Below, piece after piece: positions 34,301 through 47,400 of a stretch of 64,000 nt of DNA. Source of the stretch: Eutreptiella sp. 'Long Island Sound 2002'. Lineage: Eukaryota > Protista > Euglenida. A program made the translations under genes and the position numbers. The notes under the pieces are model-generated. The model was not told where the DNA came from. It did not search any database and worked only from the letters and a program-made list of their open reading frames with translations. The stretch lies in assembly GCA_964036045.1 (NCBI GenBank), contig OZ038378.1, positions 183,644,001 through 183,708,000 of the forward strand, in the 5' to 3' direction. The first letter of the stretch is position 1. The number at the start of each line of letters is the position of its first letter.

Positions 34301-37300
34301 CTTCGCTCAGCTCACCTTAGTTAGTCGCCACCCCCCCAAACCTGCGGTGTAATGCCTCGGGTTCAAACCCGCGACCTTGAGGCCTGTCGGGGAGTTTGAA
34401 GGCCGTGGCTCCCGGCGCCGCTGTATCCATTCTGCGGCGCTGTGGACGTCAGGGCATCCCGCAGGCCCGCCTTAAGGGCGGCCCTAACCGTCTCAGCCTG
34501 CGTTCTGTCGGTGGTGTGGGGCAGACGGTGCACTGGCGTCTGTCGTCAGGGAAGGACCTGAAACTGTTCCTGAACGCGCGGAAGCGGAAGAGGACGAAGG
34601 GCAGTACTGTAGAGCGGACCCACAACGAGTTCTTCGTCGGCGTCTTGACGTTTTTGCTCGGCCTTTGTTTAGGTACGGCCCGTGCCATCCGCTTTGTTCT
34701 TTGGTCACGATCTTGTCCCAACCAAGCCTTTGTTTTAGTGGCTTGGATACCCTCCCCCAGGGGGAGGGGGGGGGGTGCCTGCCTGCCTTTTTTGAAATTC
34801 TGGGTGCCCTCAGCGGAATCACCCTCCCCACCCCCCCCCCCGGGTGGGGGTAGGCCAAGAGTGGGCTGGGATTTTTTTGGGGAAAATATTTGTAACCAAA
34901 ATATTCATTTCGCCCCTGAGCAGTGGGTTGCTAGATCTGGTCCGTACCCTAGCGGCACTATGTTACATCTGCAACACAGAGGTCCTGGATTCGAATCCAG
35001 GGCGCTGGGGTACATCAGGCAACAGACTCAACAGGCTGGGCGAGGCTAAGATTTTATGGGGGAAAAGTTTCAAACTGAAATATCTATTCCACCCCTAAGC
35101 CGGATGTGTTAGAGGTGGACAAGGCGGTGAGTGGGTGCCTGCCTCCTTGACTGGACCCCCCCCCCCTTGGGTAGGGGTAGGACAAAAGCAGTGCCTGCCC
35201 TGAAAAAGTGCCTGCCTCCTCCAAGATTTCTCCCCCCCCCTCCCCCCGTATCACAAAAAAGGCTTGGTCCCAACCGAAGCTCGACGCCTCGCGCCCGACG
35301 CCTTAACCGACGCTCCGCCGCGCCGGCGTTCGCACGCGGTGGCACTCCACACCACCGACCCCTGCATTGTTCTGCGGAACGGACTCTGCAGGGACTTTCC
35401 GCGGAACGAACGGATGCGGTCCCCGGCTGCGGAACTCCTGGTTGACTGGCGGAGGCCCTTGGGGAGGCTCCTTCAGGCCCCCGTCGTCCTCACACCCTGT
35501 GAACCGTCGGGTCAGCCACCCACGGGGGGCGCCCAGGCTCAGACCCCAACACCAACCCCCCCCCACCCCCCACCCCCGGGGGGTCCAAAACGTTGCGGAG
35601 GTCCGGAGCAGATTTGGCCCAAACTTGGCGCCAAAGGCGCCGGAAAATTTTTGTGTGCAGGCGGTGGGGGGTAAATTTTCGTTTTTACGCCATTTCTGTG
35701 GACTCAAAATGCTCTGAATTTTACGGGGAATCCAAATTCGTATGCAAAGCATGAAATTCTTTCAGACCCCTGCCCTCCCCCATGCAGCCCCCCAAACCTG
35801 CTGCTGGGACCGGACCCCCCCCAGAGGGTAATTTTGTTTTTCAAGAGCCCCACAGATGTGTGTGTTCAAGATGACCAGTGCGACGCCGGGATCATTTTGA
35901 GGTATGGATGTCGGGGTACCCGGGACCCCAGCCTGGCGACCCCCCGGACCCCCCAAGGACCCCTCCAACCCCAGGGCCCAGAAGGTTAGAGGGGGTTGTT
36001 GGTGTCAGGTCTGAGCCGGAGTGCCCCCCATGCAACCACCACCTGCCGTCGATGGGCAGCCAGTCTCTTCAGGACCCCCCCCCCCCTCTGTTGTTGATCC
36101 CTCCCAACCCGGTCTCCAGTCCCATGCACACGGGGAGTCTGCGTCCCCTCGTTGTGCTGGTGCCACGAATCCCGTTTGCGCTTGGGCTGTGGTTGGTCTT
36201 TGGTCGTCTCGCTCACTCGCGCAAGGGGGTCCCAGTCCATGAGGCCCTTCTGAAGGCCTTCGGATGGTCCGCCTGTGCCATGGATCACATGGATCGCATC
36301 GCTGCGCCTGCAGCTGGTGCTGACAGTCTGATCACCGCAGTGTTGCATCGCCCCTCCCTTGTCGCACCGCAGTGGCCGGGACTTGCGCTACCATATGGCA
36401 CCACACCCACAAAGAGGGGCAGTGGGCCCTGCACCTCACCGAACACTCGGACCTGTACATCTTCTTCTGGAGCTTCACGGAGTACCTTGTGGAGCTCAGT
36501 GCACTGGTGCCGATCTCACTGGCGGTGTGCCTGGAGCTGGTCAAGTTTGGGCATGCCTACTTCATCCATAACGATCTTAAGATGTGCTCCATAGAACACG
36601 GTGCAGCCTGTGCCCTGCCACATCCCCCGCCAGCCCTGCCCCCTGCCCCCTGCCTCCTGCCTCGCCCTGCAACCCAACCCCTCCGACAGGACCTTTGCTT
36701 GGCTTTCTGCTCTCCTGCCCCTGTCTGCTTCCGCCCTTCTGCTACGGTGGTGTCTCACGCCCATGTCCCGTTACCCCTTTTGGCAATATTTTTGACCCCT
36801 GCGTGCTGCACCCATGGAGGCGAGTGTTGCTTGTACATTTGCGCGCCCCCGTGTTTGACTTGTGGCAGGAATTCGGCCCAAATTGGTTTTTGTGTGTTGG
36901 CTGTGCATCCCAATCCCTTCGGTGCTACGATGCTTGTCTGGAACACACACCCATGAAACAATTGTTGCTGACAAAATTGTATTCCTCCCGGGACAAGTTG
37001 TCATTGGCAGCTTATTTGCATGATTCAAGGACCGCATGGTGACATGGTGGTGATGGCATGTACCTGCTTATTGACTGATCGAGATCAGGCATCACTTGCA
37101 TCCGCCCCCCCCCCCCCGCACACACACACACGGACACACACACACACACACACACAGGTGTTTTGTTTGGTGCCTGCCAGCTGGTGACACTGCATACCCA
37201 ACCGAAAGCCAAACAGGCACGTACATCGGTAACCTCAACTACACGGGCGGCCCCTGGGCTGGTGAACCCCCTGCCTGGCACGACCTCACGGGTCACACAA

Positions 37301-40300
37301 AATGTCCGCAATCACGCATGAAATTTTGGAAGCATTGCAGCGCCCGGAGCTCCTGGAAGCTCTGGCTGCTGCCCTTGCGCCACTACTCAGTGGGCGGAGC
37401 TCGCCGAAGCCGAAGCCAACGGCATCTGTCGCTGCTGCTACTCCAGCTGCAACTACAAGGGAAGAGGAGCTCCTCGGCATTATCCGGGAACTGAGAGGCA
37501 CTGTCAAAGATTTGCGCGCGGCGCTGCAAGCGGCAGGAGGTACGCTCACACCCTCGAAAGCACAGGCCAATGCGGCCAAGGATGAAACCCCCTCATACCG
37601 GGAGGCGCTACAACGACGAATGAAAGCCCAAAGCAGGCTTGTCGTGCAGGATGTCCCAGACCTGGGGGAACCACTGCAGCCCACAGCGACTGCGGTGCAT
37701 GAGATTGAGGGCAAATACGGCTTCACTGCGGTCCAAGGGCGCCGCATCTACCAGGGAGAGCACAAGACCGCACTCAAATCGCTGCAACAGATAGGAGCAA
37801 ACAAGCCTGTCAATGATTGGAAAGTCACAGAGGCCACGGCGAAGGCCTTCGAACACGTCTTGCTTGTGGGACAGCCGCTGGCGGAAGCGCACGCGATAGC
37901 AACACAGGCTCTAATGAAATATGACAGCATCCAGAGCGTCAGCGCACACGTGCTAGCGACGAATTGCAGACGAGGAGTGGTCAATGTGCCAGGCATTCTG
38001 GCAGCGCTTGGCAGCTCACGGGAGTGCTTACATATCAAGGATTTCATTCTCAGTATCAAGGTCGTTACCAAACGTATGTCTTGGGAAGTCAAGAGGGACC
38101 CGGGTGTGACTGTGATCCCGCCTGAGCATTCCATTCTGCTTTGCTGGGAACGACCCAGGGACGGAGTTGAAGGAAAGGACACGGAGCCAGAGGTTCTACC
38201 TCAGGACAAAGCCGCAATTCGGATAGTGTGCTGCTTAGACCCTTCCGCACTGCGCGCGGGACAGGACAGCACCAAAGTCAAGGCATCCCGCTGGGCTGAA
38301 AACACGTGCTGGGAGCTGACAGCCCCCCTACTCCAGCCGGCTCTCACCAGTCCCCCACCCATGCAAGTGGGCAAGAGGGGTAGCAAGTATGAAGTCACGG
38401 TGGTGCTACCAGCGCCCATGGCTAAGCAGGTGCTCTGCAGCAGTGGCAAAATCGTCGGCCTGGAATACAGGTTGTTTATGAGCAAAACCGTCGATGTCGA
38501 TGACCTGAAGGCCAACATGGTCTGGGTCAAGCTCCCTCCATCCAACAAGCGCTCCATTTCGGAGCAGTGGCGCAGATTAAGCAAGCAGCCTTGGTTCGCA
38601 GGCCTCATGGCAGGGGACAAGGACGACAGACTCGGGGTACGAGTATGGGGGGGGGCTGTCTTGCCCGAAACCAGGGAGGAGATCGCAGGACTGTTGGGCA
38701 TACAACTCACCACCCCAATGACACGAGTGAGAGTGAGAGGCTATGGGATTTCTATGGGCCTTGTCTCAGGGTCGCAGTCTGCGGCCCAAAGGGAGGCTGA
38801 CCGCGTTTTCGGCGCCAACACTGTCAAAGTGCAACGATGTCAACACCTGAAACACAGTGGGCTGATCAACCCTGTGTTTGATATGGATATTACGGGAGTC
38901 CCCCCAGACTGGGAGGGCTGCACTGCACCGGCGAAAGATTCGCGGATGCCTGTCCGTAGGTGGCACCTATGTCTGCGTAAATCCACTGGCCCCTCATACA
39001 CCCCAGTGGGGAAAAACACGACGCTCCCTGCGATCCAGGGGTGTGTCTTGCCTGATGATGAAGAAATGGAGGACTCGCCTGCAGGAGCCCCTGCGGCAGA
39101 GGAGGATGAGAGCATTCTCTGAACCCCCCCCCCCCCTGGAAGATGGCACTGAGTCACAGGTCCTCTAAAATTCGTTCAGACAAACGTTACCTCTTTGCGC
39201 GTTCATCACGAGGACGTATTCAATTTTCAGGCAGATGTGATTGGAATGGAAGAAACCCGGCTCACTGAGGCTGGGCAACGCTGCATGAGGGCAATTGCAA
39301 AAGATTGGGGCTGGGAATGCCACTGGGGAAAACCCCTGGGCTCCCCAACGGGGGGCATCTGGGGAGCTCCCCAAGGAGGGGTGGGACTTTTGTTCAGGAA
39401 GGGCTGGAGTGTCCGCAAGGTTGAGCCAGATCCAGACGACCCGATTGCCTGCAGGCTGTGGCATTCGGGGCGCTGGCTACACACACGGGCAGGAATCGGT
39501 GCAGGGCACTGTGTGCTGAACATATTTGTAGCCTATGGCATACCAGGCAACGAATCTTTGAACCAGGAGTTCTGGGAGCAGGTGGTCTGCTATATGAGCA
39601 AACTAGGCAATGCCGGATGCATCCTGCTAACGGACGCAAATTTCAATTTCGACCTGCTGCACAAAGTTCCTGCCGCACTCCTGACGGCGCTGGCAGACGG
39701 CTGGCTGGTGGATGCCGACCGCACTTTTAGCGTTCTCCATGGCACGCCATGTGCATGTGGCTTCACGACAGCAGGCAAACCCCCCAACCGCATTGACGGC
39801 CTCCTGGTCACCCCAGCGCAAGCAGGCACGTTGACTGATGTCACAGCGCTGAAGTCTCATTCCCTCCCTGGGCATGCTCCAGTGTGCTTCACTTTCTCGC
39901 TTGACGCCCCAATGCAGAAAGTTGTTAAAATGAAGAAACTGCCTCCTTTCTCCCCCCCCCCCAGATCAGCTGAGGACACTCAGAAAATCTGTGACTCGCT
40001 GCTCCGGCCACACAAGGCAGGTTGGAATGCCCTGCTGCAACAAGGGAATGTCAATGACATTTGGAACAGGTGGACCTGGCTGGCCGAGGAAGTAGGCATG
40101 GCGCTCACATGCACGCATCTTACACTGGACACCCCCAGCCCCACACTCCCATTTGCACCCAAGAGTGCCCCACGGGGACGTGGCACGGAGCGAATGTTGC
40201 AGGACACTACGCTAGCTCCGACAGGCCTGGCGCCCAACGGCGGCCCACGCACGCGCATACTTTCCAAAATCACGGGGACCTTGGGAGCCCTTCGTTCGGT

Positions 40301-43300
40301 CATCCAGTGGCAACGTGCCCAGCTGGGCATCAGGGGCAAACGAGTCCCGGCATCCGCCAAACGCAAAGCCAGCCAGGTTTTCAGGCCAGGGGTGGTGCCC
40401 AGACAGGTGGAACTATCGTGGCAGGCCGCGTGCCGCCGCATGCGCAAAACGGCGCTGGCCTTTCGTGAGGACCTGCTGCTTCATGAATTTGTGGCCAGTG
40501 CCCCTGACCCCTCCCTCCCACTCATACGCCCCCTGCCAACGCTGGTAGACTGCATGTCGCTGTATGACAGCCTGTGCGCACTGGGGAAGAGATATGCCCG
40601 ATATGAAGAGCGCACGCGCATTGATAAATGGAAATCCAAAATGGACCAGGCCTGGCTGGACAGGCCAAAGGAGGTTTATCAGTGGATACAGAACGAGTAC
40701 CAACCTCCTCTGGTTATGCTCCTGGACCCAGACACAAGCCAACCAACGGCGAACATCCCCCGCATGGATGAAATTCTTCATGCCTCTTGGGACCAGGTTA
40801 TGCGAAAATATGCAGACACCCCAGAGCCAGACGTGCACGCTTTTGCACAGAAGTATGGTAAGTTTCTGATAAAGGGAGTGCAGATGCAGTCCACCCCTAT
40901 CACAGGGTCCCGGCTCGCGCAACGCCTTAGAAAAATGGGTGTTCACACAGCCACCGGCCTGGATGGCTGGTGTGTTTCGGACCTACTACTGCTGCCCACC
41001 TGTCTGCTGGACATGCTGTCAGAAATTCTGTTTCTAGTTGAGGCAACAGGAACCTGGCCCAGGGTCCTGGCGAGGGGATACGTCTCGCTGATCCCGAAAG
41101 GGGAAGGGATGATGCCGATGCAGCAACGCCCACTGTCCGTACTGTCCCAGATCTATAGGGTCTGGGCAGGGATCAGGTTAGAAGAGTGCATGGTGTGGCA
41201 GGAACTGTGGATCCACCCGCACGCTTACGGTTTTCGCAAGAAGCGCGGCGCCACTGATGCGGCCGCCTTTATCTCCATGCTCATTGAGCTACACAAACTG
41301 ATGAAAGCAGTTCTGCATGGTTTTGGATTAGACTACATAAAATGCTTCGATTTAATCCCACAATCCATTGTACTGCATATTGCACTGACGCAGGGGATGG
41401 ATTTGGGCACACACAGGGCCCTCTCTGGCATGTATCGCACTCTCACAAGGTGCTTTAAAATAATGGGGTGTTTGGCCAGTTTTTTCGATGCCACCAATGG
41501 CATCCTCCAGGGCTGCCCATTGAGTGTGATACTCATCAATCTCCTGACCTCGGTCTGGAAGCGGGTGCTGGATGCACAGCAACAGGGCATCAAAGTCGCA
41601 GTACAGGCCCTCCCCCCCAGCGATCAGCCAGCGCAGGCCCTGCACTTCATCCTAACTGCCCTTGGGTATGCGGATGACACTTATGGGTTTGCAGCCGGAA
41701 GCAATACCCTCACCCCCCTGCTAGACTGCACCACTGACTGGCTTGAGGACACGGGTCAAGGGGTGAACGCGAAGAAATCTGTCGGTTTTTCGTCAGACGC
41801 CCGTCACCTAGTGAAGGCGGCATTACAGGGGGTGCCCTTCCCTATCTCTTCTGAGTTTAAGTCCCTGGGCGCGGGGGTCCGCACCACGGACGCGACTTGT
41901 TCGGGACCGCTCATCAAGAAAAGGATTTCCAGAGCCTGCAGCCTCCTGGATAGGGTGCATGGCGCTCAGGGCAATTTTGAAAGGAGATGCGACATCATCT
42001 CCACAATGATCACGGCCACTGGCCTGCACGCAGCAGAAATAGTGCCACTTCAGCCCAGAGACCTCCTGCCCTTCGAGACTAAGGTCATGCAGACCATTTG
42101 GGGACGGTCACGGCCCGGTAGGGCCAAAGAAATTTTTTTCACCTTGCTGTGCAAAGGGCACCGGATTGCACCCACCCTGGTACTTAAGTATCATCGCATC
42201 CTGTGGCTATCCCAGCTGTGTCGCACCAGGGGTGCTGGACAGATCACAGCCCAGGCCATTTGGGAGATGACATCATTTCACAAAGGCTCCGGCCCATACG
42301 GCCGGGCCATGTCCACAGCACAGGAGTGTGGCTGGGTTGCTACGCAGGGATGGTGGGGATGGAAAGTGCCTGGGCGCAAGGAACCCCTCCTCCTATACGG
42401 GGATAAAAACACTGTCAAGCACGAGGTACGTGAGCAGCTGCGCTCGCAAATGCTGGACAGCCTGGTTCAGAGGCGTCCCCGCCTGTTCGCGGGGGCTCAT
42501 TACACCACATGCCGGCGCCTGGTCCAGCCCAGCATAGCGTCATTTGCCACAGAGCTACAGCGCTCTCTCCTGCGGGGCATCCTATCAGGAGCAACCTGGA
42601 CAGCCCTCCGGGCCTATCAACGTGGCATGCGAGCCACATCCACGTGCCCGTACTGCGGCAATGCTCCGGAAAACGAGGAGCACATTTTTTGGCAGTGTTC
42701 AGCCTGGAGCACGGTGCGGGACGCCCACCTGCCGGGCATCAGGACGGCGGCAGCACAGATCACAGGCCTTCCCCTCATGGACCAGTGGCCCTCATGTTTA
42801 CGACTTTGTGGGTTAGCCCCAGAGTTAGACACAGACAGCGTCAAGTCAGGGACAGCGCTCGCATTCATGACAGCTCTGCACAATATGTTAGTAGCCGTCT
42901 TGCAGGCCCGCAAGTTACGAGACACACAATCCCCCATGCTTTTCATGGGGTCGAACCTCTCACAGCAGCTTCGGCAATACCCGTACCACCAACTGGTGGG
43001 ACCCCTCCCCAGACCGGAAGACAAAGGGTTACTTCTTTTGCGTACCCCTAAGAAGGTGGAATGGCAGTGGGAAATGCCCTTTTTGGCGGACCTGCTGCGC
43101 TGGCTGAGGGAACTGCACTGGGCCCCTGAACCAGGCACGGTGACGTTCTTGGAACTTGCACTGGACTTTGAGGAATTTGCGCAACGCACCCTCCCACACG
43201 CTCCACAGGCAAAATTTAAGGGCACCACCCTTTCGCTGCAAGAGAGAGGCCGGGTCTTACGACTGGCAATGGCAAATGCGCAGCGCCTGGTCACCAAAGG

Positions 43301-44395
43301 CCATTTGCATCAGGCGCGTGTGGTCACACGCTGCAGCTCTTTAGTTCCTTTGGGGGGGCCGGCACTCTGCGGCCTGAACTGCCGCCCTTATTTCACTTGC
43401 CGCAGTGCCATGAACATGCACGTTCAGCAGTTAGCGGCATACTGTGAGCGCACATGGGCCACCAAGGTTGGTCTCAACAGGATACACAAACTGCGCCCGC
43501 ACACACACAGGCCACGCAGAACAGCGCAGGAAGTGGAGGAGCATCGGCTACAGCGTGCACTCCAGGGGAATCTGCAGTTGGGGCTGGCCCCGCCCTCGGA
43601 GCAGACCACTTTTGCCAAAGGGGGGGGGGGGCTGCTCCTCCTTTGCAGCTGATTTCTTCCCTGTGATAGGGGATGGGAAGCTCCCACAGCGCCCCTACAC
43701 CGGGACACGCAGGCGCGCAAACACACACAGGGGGCCACCACCGGCGCCGCCGGCTGATCCGTCAAAGTGTGCCCAGCACTCGGCTGACGCATGCACGACC
43801 TGCAAGAGATTTCGGCGCACAGCTGAAGCGTGCTGTGCGCTGGGACATCACGCTGATGACCACATAGCACGCAGACCGCAACTGCAACTGTGCCCACTGC
43901 ATGGCCTGCCACCGTGCCCGAGGTGCACACTCAAGCAAAGGGGAGTGCGCCACTGCTGTCAGCGGGGACACCATAAAGTGTGCACCCCAGTGCCTGCGCG
44001 CCGGAAACGCCCACTTGCTGCACATGCACAACTGCCCAACAAACGACCACGCCTGCAAGGGCCTGCACGTATCTCAACGGGTCTGCTGAGGTCCCCACAC
44101 CAACCCCCCACCCCTCCAGCCCCCAAGCGCAGGAGGCCGAAAACACCCCCCCCTCCGTCCCCACCTGCCCCAGTTCCACGGGGGCTGGAGGAGACCGTGG
44201 CCGAGGATGTCGCCCGCCCGCTTTTCGTGACGAGGCACGGGAGAGCAAACACTCTGGATACTTAGCCAGTAAAATACAGAGGTTCTGATTCCGCAGAAGG
44301 GAGGGAAACAACGTCGCAAAGAGGCCTCAGCAGACCTGAGCCAAATGGGGCGTCCAGCCCAACGCTGCACAAGGATCCACCTCTAAAAGTACAGA

Positions 44396-44453
<58 letters not shown>

Positions 44454-47400
44454 ACACCTCCAGTTTGTATGTAAGTGGGGATGCCAAGACAAAACATTGT
44501 GTTCCGCTTGTTTCATTCATGAGCACTATCCTCCTGTTTGCCTGCCCCTGCCGTGCCATATGCCCGCGTCCAGGTCCATTGTGTATGGTGGGCGCTGAAT
44601 GACGCAGTACGAAAGCCCACAGAAAAGGGCAGTCCAAGGAGCGGTGCTGGCTTATACGTTAGGCCATGAGCGCCCATGAGGAGACCTTTTTGGGAAAAGA
44701 TCGCACATGACACATCCTCAAAGTGATCCGCGCGGCGTGGGGGATCATTTGGAGGGGGTCTGTGTCGGGGTATCAGGGATCCCCAGGGCTCCTTTTAACA
44801 ACTCAGCACCATTGGGGGGTCCCCCCCCCCCCTGAACCCCCCCCCCCAAGTGATTCGGCCAAATTAATCTCCGGGCCGACCAATCAAAATTTTTCTTCGA
44901 GGCCTTTGGCGCTTCTCAAAACTCAGCACGGGTGGGTGGGGGGAGGGGGGTCCCCCCTCCCTGACCCTCTTGGGGTGGCCGTTGTTGGTCCGCCAAATTT
45001 GGTAATTCGCACTTTCCCATCCAGACGCCCGGGGGAGGGGGGGATGAACCGAACCATAAAGGTCTGGAACAATGGACCGGCCAAGCAGCGGCGGGTGGTC
45101 CCCGCCCCCGGGGCGGGGGGTGGCAGCCAATCGGCCTCAAAAATTGGAGAGTGTGGGGAGGGGCTGGAGGGGGCAAAGGTCCAATTGGCAGGGACCATTA
45201 TTCTGGTTGCCTCCAAAGGCCCGAGAAGGAAAATTGTGTCCAGTGTAGCCTCCCACGGACATGCGCAGGACCTGTGCAGGTTATCACGCGTTGCTCGCAC
45301 CGGGTTGGCTTTTGGGGGTCCGCCATTGTTGTGGTCAGGGCTGGGGTCTCGCTAGGGGGCTCCAGTGACCCCCTCCCATCGGAGTGGAAAGCCCGCCCTG
45401 TCCAGTGTGCTGCACCCAGTCGATGTTTCTCGGGGAAACCCCCCCAGCCTTCCCCCATACCGTGCAAACTTTAAAGATTTGCGGAAATATTTAATTCTGT
45501 CGGCAACGTGTCTTTATATGAAAAAAAACAAATTCAAAAAATGAATTAATTTTTTAGGGCCAGGCGTTGGAAACAATAAAAGGGTGCGCAAAAGTGCGCA
45601 AAAATTAATTAATTTTGTGTGCGGATGTCCCTGTATTCCTCTTCTTTTGCAGACACAATGCTCAGTTTGCAATCATTTTTTCAAGTTATCCCCCATGAAA
45701 CTGCTGTGGCCCGCTTTGCAGCTGAAGGCCACAGGGCAGAAATCTCTGATTTTTGTCGTGGGATTGTCCGTGGTCCGGCTTTCCGTCCCCCGTGACAGGC
45801 TGGCATTTATTTAGTGTCTCATTATATTGATGGTCACATATGGGGAAAACCAACAGTGCATGTGAGTCCCAGTTTCTGTGTCCCGGAAGGTCAGATTTTG
45901 TGCATGTGTTTTCCACGTTGCGGTGTAGAAATTGGGACCCTGAAACTGGTGACAAGCATCAGACCAAATTTAGAAATTCCCGGCATGGCGGCAGGGGCTG
46001 GTAGGTGCAGAAATTGGGACCCTGGGACCAGGGACAAGCAGCATCATCATACCAGAGCGCCTTGAAAAGCATCCATTCACGAAGAGCATAATCATTTGTA
46101 CGAAAGAATTTGGTTGCGCAAGATGCGCAAAAAAAATGCAAAAAAAGAAATAATTTTTGGGTCAAATAGCTACGCAAAAATTGAAATTTGTAAAAAAAAA
46201 TTCGCAAAAATAAATTAATTTTTCCGAATTCTGGCTGTATGCGCAAAATTTTGCAAAAAAAAAAAATTCAAATCGGCCTGCGCAAAAATTAGGGTTCCGC
46301 GAAATTCAAAAGTTTGCACGGTATATCTGGGCAGATGCGGGCGCCCGGGTCTTCGGGGGGAGCCTGGAACCCCCATTAGTCGGCACGCCGAGGACTGTGC
46401 AGGCCGCCCGCTGTCCGCGTCGGGCCTCAGTTTCTGTGGCACTGGTGCGGAAAAGGGCTCACGTTCCGGCAGGCCTGTTGCCCTCTTTCCTGTGGTCGGA
46501 GGTGAGGAGGGCCCGTAGGGGCGCACACGGGCGTGCCAAGCCACGTGCGTGTGAATACCGCATGAGGGCAAGGCAGGGAGATCAGCTCCAGGCTATTGTA
46601 AAAGGAGAACCCCCCCGCGCGGGTGGGTGGGTTGGGTGGGTCAGAGGCAAAAAAAAGGTTTGTGTACCGAAAGCCGGCCTCAAATTTCCGGCCCCTTTGA
46701 TAAATTTCACTTTTTGCCGAAGGAAAGTATTTCTGATGCGGGTGGGTGGATGGGTCGGCCGGGCTGGCCAGGGCCCCAAACAACCCCCCCATCCCCCGGG
46801 GTCCTTAAGCAATAGCCTGACGGGCTCACGCACCCGGTGTTCCGCAGGGGTGGCCGTTCCAGCGGTGGCGCGCACCACGAATTTGGTGGAGGACTTGGGC
46901 CGTGTGGAGCATGTGTTCTCTGACAAGACCGGCACTTTGACGCAAAACCGCATGGATTTTCTCAAGTGCGTGATCGGCGGTGAACGGTGCCTCCTCCCCC
47001 ACATTCCCGTCCCTCCTCCACACAGCCTTGGCCGCGGAGGCAGAGGCAAAGGCAAAAGCAGAGGGACAGGCAGACGCAGACCTCAGCGTTTGTCCAGAGG
47101 GTTGTGTGATGCCAATCCGCACAGACAAAGTCTGTGCACCTCTTCCCTCTCTCTTAGTGGTGGAGATAGAGTGTATCCTAACAATCGTAATTGCGGTGTC
47201 CGACAATACCCCAAGCTCAACCATCCGCACTAGCCGCCGTGGTGGTGAGTGTCGGTGAGTGGCAAAAATTCCCATTTTTCCGTCGGTGACTGCGGTGAGT
47301 TGACTTCTTATCAAGGGTACTGTGGAGAAGGCCTACAACCCCCCCGGAAAAATGGGGGAAATGGGACTGTGAAAACGGGGTATTCCGTCCCATTTTTCTC

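Follow-up and report, generated by a model that had tools for sequence, protein, structure and literature searches.

A predicted zinc module, repeated in tandem, in the basic ORF2 tail of an APE-type LINE clade of Euglena, Diplonema and related protists

We describe a Cys/His module that follows the pattern C-x2-H-x4-C-x2-C-x(5-15)-CC-x2-(G)-HH over some 28–32 residues with a net charge of about +3, and that stands, one to three times in tandem, in the basic tail with which the ORF2 protein (ORF2p) of an APE-type LINE clade of Euglena, Diplonema and related protists ends. No described family claims this module. It came to light in a stretch of 64,000 nucleotides from Eutreptiella sp. 'Long Island Sound 2002' (GenBank assembly GCA_964036045.1, contig OZ038378.1, positions 183,644,001 to 183,708,000), here called the window; coordinates given without a locus name are positions in the window, where all features described lie on the forward (+) strand.

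Results

Two modules with the same ligand spacing

In the frame-1 translation of the + strand, module A (43768..43851) reads C-x2-H-x4-C-x2-C-x9-CC-x2-GHH; module B (43891..43974) has the same ligand spacing, and a linker of 13 residues (43852..43890) lies between the two. The peptides quoted for both stretches in an earlier note on this DNA, made from the sequence alone, match that translation exactly. Also borne out is the statement that the two have the spacing of eight ligands in common and little else: 10 of the 28 residues are shared, made up of the eight Cys/His plus a Gly and an Arg. At the DNA level, 38 of 84 bases are identical, so that modules A and B do not go back to a recent DNA duplication. 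When a relaxed form of the motif pattern was run over the six frames of the window, it found modules A and B only, and it had 0 matches in 200 shuffles of the window.

The surroundings are as the earlier note had described them. Three basic NLS-like clusters follow on the 3′ side (43999..44142), with RRKRP at 43999-44013, KRPR at 44041-44052 and PKRRRPK at 44122-44142, and the modules lie well downstream of the CCHC knuckle of ORF2 (residues 1129-1170), at a distance of about 370–440 residues.

The LINE that carries the modules

Both modules are part of a full-length LINE (non-LTR retrotransposon) of about 7.24 kb (37157..44396). A (CA)n stretch, its target microsatellite, lies directly 5′ of the element (37119..37156; Tandem Repeats Finder), and a (CA)n tail or 3′ target microsatellite follows it (44397..44457), the length of which varies between copies. 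ORF1 (37302..39122) specifies 606 amino acids and matches no Pfam family. ORF2 of the window copy (39195..43652, frame 3) includes a reverse transcriptase (RT) of the non-LTR type (residues 633-884; 41091-41846; PF00078 RVT_1, E=4e-13) and the zf-RVT-type CCHC knuckle (42579-42704), a weak match to zf-RVT (PF13966). The APE endonuclease match in the window ORF2 is weak (PF03372, E=0.13, residues 10-89) and is clear in some homologues, e.g., in P0100 (E=2.8e-7); PF03372 and PF00078 are both found among the homologue annotations. As is usual for a LINE, the copies end alike on the 3′ side, in a simple-repeat tail, and are truncated to varying extents on the 5′ side.

For the last 1 kb of the element, at least 1421 candidate matches lie in the 2.28-Gb genome from which the window is taken; 40 of them were scored and showed 99–100% identity. 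For its first 0.4 kb, there are at least 155, mostly at 99–100% identity. The LINE family is very young and of high copy number, and evidently it is active or was so very recently.

Three further observations concern the ORFs. The ORF2 frame of intact copies opens 43 codons 5′ of the first Met, and the gap between ORF1 and ORF2 is only some 30–70 bases long, which suggests that ORF2 may be translated by reinitiation or from a non-AUG start. The region of roughly 300 residues that separates the CCHC knuckle from the G-run discussed below (42705-43619; ORF2 residues ~1171-1475) has no Pfam match and is conserved in relatives down to 27% identity, e.g., in the stretch LELALDFE. In the relatives P0007, P0127 and P0017, an RNase H follows the RT in ORF2.

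The reading frame through the modules

In the window copy, ORF2 is ended early by a frameshift in a run of 12 G (43620..43631): its stop is met at 43652, just 3′ of the run. The motifs lie in frame 1 as against frame 3 for ORF2, within an ORF that spans 43444-44265, and the basic, Pro-rich C-terminal tail of ORF2 is accordingly read in frame 1 here (43632..44265; stop codon 44263-44265). The earlier note had assigned the motifs to the C-terminus of ORF2, an assignment that does not hold for the window copy but is right for copies with 11 G. Among the 32 genomic copies read, 24 have 11 G and eight have 12 G. The 11-G copies, natural sequences none of which was edited, have a single open frame of 1703 codons that leads from the APE region over the RT and the CCHC knuckle through both motifs to the same stop (for example L031:2753-7861 and L033), and the frameshift repair invoked in the earlier note is thereby found in nature.

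The 12-G copies have no further diagnostic substitution in common, by which a tail-less sublineage is ruled out; they are recurrent homopolymer slips or long-read assembly errors. Contigs over the tail from public RNA libraries have the 11-G form in three of four runs, where the libraries are estuary metatranscriptomes and one coded organism, and contigs in them are by themselves no proof of transcription.

Comparison with described domains

That the earlier note did not recognise the motif from described LINE or zinc-finger families agrees with our searches of Pfam, PDB sequences, Foldseek, VIA-align and the ESM Atlas. Pfam at E<=1 gave no match on the window tail, the zf-CCHC and zf-RVT knuckle models included, and at E<=10 no consistent match on 18 tandem pairs (only zf-CCHC_4, in two members, at E=6); a PDB sequence search with the tail gave no match at E<=10. 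AlphaFold2 models, built with family alignments and without metal, are of moderate confidence, with a mean pLDDT of 77.7 for the tandem (82–85 over the modules) and of 78.5 for the single module (87 over its core). In the models, each module has two short helices, of which the first begins in C-x2-C and the second spans the CC pair. Neither model had a significant Foldseek match in the PDB (best: a B-box, E=3.8, TM 0.20) or a neighbour at Z>=2 in a wide VIA-align search, and the ESM Atlas, searched by features and by shape, returned only noise. For a metal-dependent fold of 30–40 residues, such blanks are weak evidence that the modelled fold may be new.

Among the better known Cys/His families, the classical C2H2 pattern C-x2-4-C-x12-H-x3-5-H differs from the module in both spacing and ligand order, and there is no Pfam C2H2 match. 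The B-box type 2 has the pattern C-x2-H-x7-C-x7-C-x2-C-x5-H-x2-H. For this family too, Pfam gave no match and VIA-align no neighbour, and the Foldseek rows are insignificant. Like the CCHC or zf-RVT (PF13966) knuckle, the module is a Cys/His motif that lies towards the C-terminus of a LINE ORF2p and is thought to contact nucleic acid, but it has eight ligands instead of four, is repeated, lies those 370–440 residues further downstream and matches no Pfam model; the window element has its own CCHC knuckle besides the new modules.

A full-text literature search with the motif pattern led only to the Cys-rich domain (CRD) of the piggyBac transposase, by way of a shared sub-pattern. The piggyBac CRD, C-x2-C-x11-C-x2-C-x4-C-x2-H-x4-C-x2-C, binds two zinc ions with seven Cys and one His (PMC5861402). 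Like the present module, it is transposon-encoded, C-terminal and eight-ligand, with conserved basic residues. The shared C-x2-H-x4-C-x2-C, which is all that the module has in common with the piggyBac CRD or PHD-like cross-brace pattern, forms the piggyBac pattern's C-terminal end but the N-terminal end of our module; the CRD lacks CC-x2-GHH, comes from a DNA transposase and not from a LINE, and shows no fold match to the module. The literature on Euglena LINEs and microsatellites, on the Diplonema genome and on the Euglena gracilis assembly has no description of the module, and the Diplonema and Euglena genome papers contain no LINE domain analysis.

Distribution and conservation of the module family

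With nothing but the tail as query (ORF2 residues 1500-1703), a word-index protein search gave no match at E<=0.01; relatives were reached via the region of ORF2 from the RT to the start of the tail and, afterwards, via a profile of the module. Among those found through ORF2, P0003 (43% identity) and P0005 (41%) have one module each, that of P0005 ending in GHEGH, while P0008 (28%) has two and P0006 (27%) has three; in Diplonema papillatum, P0009, P0012 and P0011 (26–35% identity) have three, two and one, respectively. When 12 modules are aligned, seven columns are invariant (C, H, C, C, C, C, H); the eighth ligand adjoins the last His. The HMM search proposed in the earlier note was run with a profile from these 12 modules against 1.84 billion representative proteins, and matched 127 clusters at E<=1e-3, 38 of them at E<=1e-10. 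Of the profile matches, 43 have one module, 50 have two and 26 have three, with none recognised by regular expression in seven of the weakest.

The loop between C-x2-C and CC varies from 5 to 15 residues (modes 9, 13 and 5), and about 60% of modules have a Gly before HH, which about 40% lack. In 211 of 224 distinct modules, the CC pair has two or more Cys/His after it. The mean net charge per module is +3.1, and a basic cluster occurs within 120 residues past the last module in 62 of 92 relatives. Three-module arrays have a recurring order, in which an HH-ending module without Gly is followed by a short-loop module and then by a long-loop module with RRP. In Euglena-type relatives, two modules stand at a fixed spacing of 41 residues; the linker of these tandem pairs is partly conserved as x3-[H/Y]-x2-RRP-x4, and the loop of module B has an invariant R-G-V.

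Over 85 codons around the modules, two Euglena-type subfamilies differ with a pN of 0.29 and a pS of 0.78 (saturated), which implies strong purifying selection on the protein. The suggestion in the earlier note that selection acts on the ligands is sustained by their retention in ORF2 relatives of 27–43% identity, in Diplonema papillatum LINEs and in the 127 clusters. In the window's own genome, candidate sites of the module number at least 7526, and several belong to open frames 1703–1704 codons long.

The context of the modules is that of LINEs. In a Pfam scan of eight long profile matches, all of which have the look of LINE ORF2 or of pieces of it, RVT_1 was clear in five (one of them also with APE) and weak in two (one of them also with RNase H); one match had zf-RVT only and one had no Pfam match. 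Among the 96 profile matches in which 60 or more residues precede the first module, the upstream parts of 52 align to LINE ORF2 regions that precede the tail, and the other 44 are short fragments whose start falls in the poorly conserved linker; among the 96 compared, the module was seen in no context other than that of LINEs.

Two side observations were made in these relatives. In the P0006 and P0008 elements, an OTU-domain ORF lies 5′ of ORF1 and ORF2 on the same strand (L034:569-1942 and L036:1231-3603, on ENA metagenome contigs), in one case after a weak ubiquitin-like match; this suggests, from ORF order, that there may be a LINE subgroup with an OTU deubiquitinase-like ORF. On Diplonema papillatum contig JAPJBO010000604.1 (L075:8168-10533), a second, related three-module LINE tail is located directly 3′ of the first element, so that nested or tandem insertions of module-bearing LINEs occur in Diplonema too.

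Insertion sites and the (CA)n association

We analysed the element ends at loci L001-L030 and L037-L066. The 3′ UTR (44266..44396 in the window) ends in ...AAAAGTACAGAT in 29 out of 29 copies read and is followed in each by (CA)n of variable length. On the 5′ side, a script count found (CA)n within 20 bases of the common first base in 25 of 29 full-length copies; by eye, (CA)n is upstream in 28 of 29, in two of these through a spliced leader, and absent in one. The element is (CA)n-specific, being strictly associated with (CA)n. Several insertions lie inside the (CA)n tail of another element, either an earlier, truncated copy or a different (CA)n-tailed one, by which head-to-tail stacks have formed (e.g., L010, L026, L071 and L074).

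The two copies with a spliced leader at the 5′ junction are the full-length copies L054 (G000:C11:18468932-18472335) and L064 (G000:C5:63263105-63266508). In both, ACACTTTCTGAGTGTCTATTTTTTTTCG stands between the upstream (CA)n and the first bases of the element, where it replaces the 'AG' found before GTGTTTTG in other copies. It is the sequence of the spliced-leader primer of Euglena gracilis (PMC5654406). The leader identifies the host as Euglena-type, in agreement with the Diplonema relatives, and a vertebrate or other animal host is thereby discarded. Apparently, the LINE RNA was trans-spliced to the spliced leader at that AG, then reverse-transcribed and inserted.

The earlier note suggested that the modules could provide the (CA)n target specificity and proposed to test whether they co-occur with CA-flanked insertions. 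Co-occurrence is seen in the window family and in P0003 (43% identity), which ends in (CA)n and has one module where the window family has two; all Euglena-type subfamilies sampled end in (CA)n. It breaks down in Diplonema papillatum, where three copies of the three-module LINE (L067, L075 and L076) share the 3′ end ...CATTTCAAGTTCACACTGCTTAAC (also given as ...CACTGCTTAAC) and, past this end, continue into unrelated sequences with neither a (CA)n tail nor a (CA)n flank. This Diplonema LINE, with its three copies, is the one distant family that has a defined 3′ end. P0008 and P0100, each read from a single contig, are free of (CA)n over the 900 bases that follow the stop, and P0006 has none in the 148 bases between its stop and the contig end. 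Since a three-module LINE does without (CA)n and a (CA)n-tailed relative does with a single module, reading (CA)n is not a property of the module family as such, and the suggested link between modules and (CA)n specificity finds no support.

We regard it as unlikely that the element is guided to CA microsatellites by its tandem modules, acting as a DNA-binding domain with sequence specificity for (CA)n/(TG)n. Such a domain would fit the strict (CA)n association at the 3′ ends and at nearly all 5′ ends, the (CA)n end of P0003 and the invariant R-G-V loop of module B among Euglena-type relatives, and it would have a precedent in the C-terminal, eight-ligand cross-brace finger of piggyBac, which binds DNA sequence-specifically (PMC5861402). 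It fits poorly with the unrelated flanks of the three Diplonema copies, with the sequences free of (CA)n after the stops of P0008, P0100 and P0006, and with a module count that differs, one versus two, between (CA)n-tailed families. Nor would a reader be needed: target-specific APE LINEs, such as those of the R1 clade and the telomere-specific ones, owe their specificity to the endonuclease and to base pairing between the 3′ end of their RNA and the nicked target, tail annealing and APE specificity being sufficient in these other LINEs, and where the RNA ends in (CA)n, it would pair unaided with a nicked (TG)n strand. It is more likely that (CA)n specificity is set by the (CA)n RNA tail, through its annealing to the (TG)n strand once nicked, and by the nicking preference of the putative APE, with the protein tail at most assisting.

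Microsatellite-specific APE-type LINEs exist in the insect R1 clade, where Mino inserts into AC repeats and Waldo into ACAY repeats. The present LINE is like them in that it inserts into a simple repeat and has the same repeat as its 3′ tail; we know of no such C-terminal module in Mino, Waldo or other insect R1-clade elements of this kind.

Discussion

Zinc binding by the module, at a binuclear site, is plausible from its ligand pattern, as eight ligands would probably hold two Zn per module. With somewhat more belief than doubt, we take the module for a zinc-stabilised, nucleic-acid-binding or chaperone tail without strong sequence preference, conserved in the ORF2p of a protist LINE clade. 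The modules would bind Zn and, together with the flanking Arg/Lys clusters, would contact nucleic acid, that is, the 3′ end of the element RNA and/or the nicked target strand. The tail would then help annealing and priming in target-primed reverse transcription, in the way of C2 in L1Tc, and the basic clusters may also serve nuclear import.

For a basic zinc-module tail in a euglenozoan LINE protein, there is one analogue that has been studied by experiment, the C2 domain of L1Tc in Trypanosoma cruzi. The two fingers of C2 are of the classical C2H2 type and are flanked by RRR and RRRKEK; the domain binds RNA, ssDNA and dsDNA and acts as a nucleic-acid chaperone, with strand annealing (PMC2805920). 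Both are C-terminal tails of a euglenozoan APE-type LINE protein, with tandem zinc motifs, Arg/Lys flanks and an NLS-like sequence. The fingers of C2 (C-x2-C-x12-H-x4/5-H) have four ligands and one Zn, whereas the present module has eight ligands in another order and spacing; there is no sequence similarity between them, and the role, experimental in L1Tc, is inferred here. An L1Tc-like role would accordingly be one of analogy, drawn from position and composition and not from homology.

Many two-zinc cross-brace fingers, such as the B-box, MYND and RING, are protein-interaction surfaces, and the module equals them in ligand count. It could, with a small probability, be a surface for protein-protein interaction or assembly that recruits a host factor, ORF1p or a second ORF2p, or that acts in nuclear import; NLS-like clusters adjoin the modules, and the best Foldseek rows, though insignificant, are B-box domains. 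No significant fold or sequence match links the module to any such family, and the strongly basic character of modules and flanks fits nucleic-acid binding better.

There is a slim chance that short DNA or RNA sequences are read by the modules, which would then be two-zinc fingers of a new class, and that module number and module sequence set the target or tail preference of each LINE family. If that were true, they would read (CA)n in the window's host and other sites elsewhere, and would constitute a compact, modular targeting domain for retrotransposon insertion.

It is very improbable that the GHH-ending modules are miniature HNH/EndoVII-type nucleases with a second cleavage activity. Only the letters 'GHH' and the Cys pairs recall the zinc-stabilised His-Me fingers of the Tox-GHH families, and Pfam gave no HNH or Tox-GHH match even at E<=10; the Gly is optional, being absent in about 40% of modules, the models consist of two short helices and no beta-beta-alpha unit, and a unit of 28 residues would be too small, in an element that already has a putative APE endonuclease. 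Finally, that the motifs, out of frame with ORF2 in the window copy, are a chance Cys/His-rich stretch in a non-functional 3′ region is refuted by their being in frame in most copies and conserved in 127 clusters, by the 0 matches in 200 shuffles and by a pN far below pS.

Cys/His motifs in the C-terminal part of LINE ORF2 were already known, and their roles are poorly understood. New here is an eight-ligand module that has no Pfam model, solved structure or fold neighbour and that is conserved across a protist LINE clade. For structural study, it offers a small fold that is putatively new and metal-binding. It merits the definition of a family in the domain databases, because current euglenozoan annotations give such proteins misleading names, e.g., 'X-element' or 'R2DM'. 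The putative zinc-stabilised tail, present in the 11-G form and absent from the 12-G form of one and the same LINE, provides a clean system in which to study the role of a C-terminal zinc domain of a LINE in target-primed reverse transcription.
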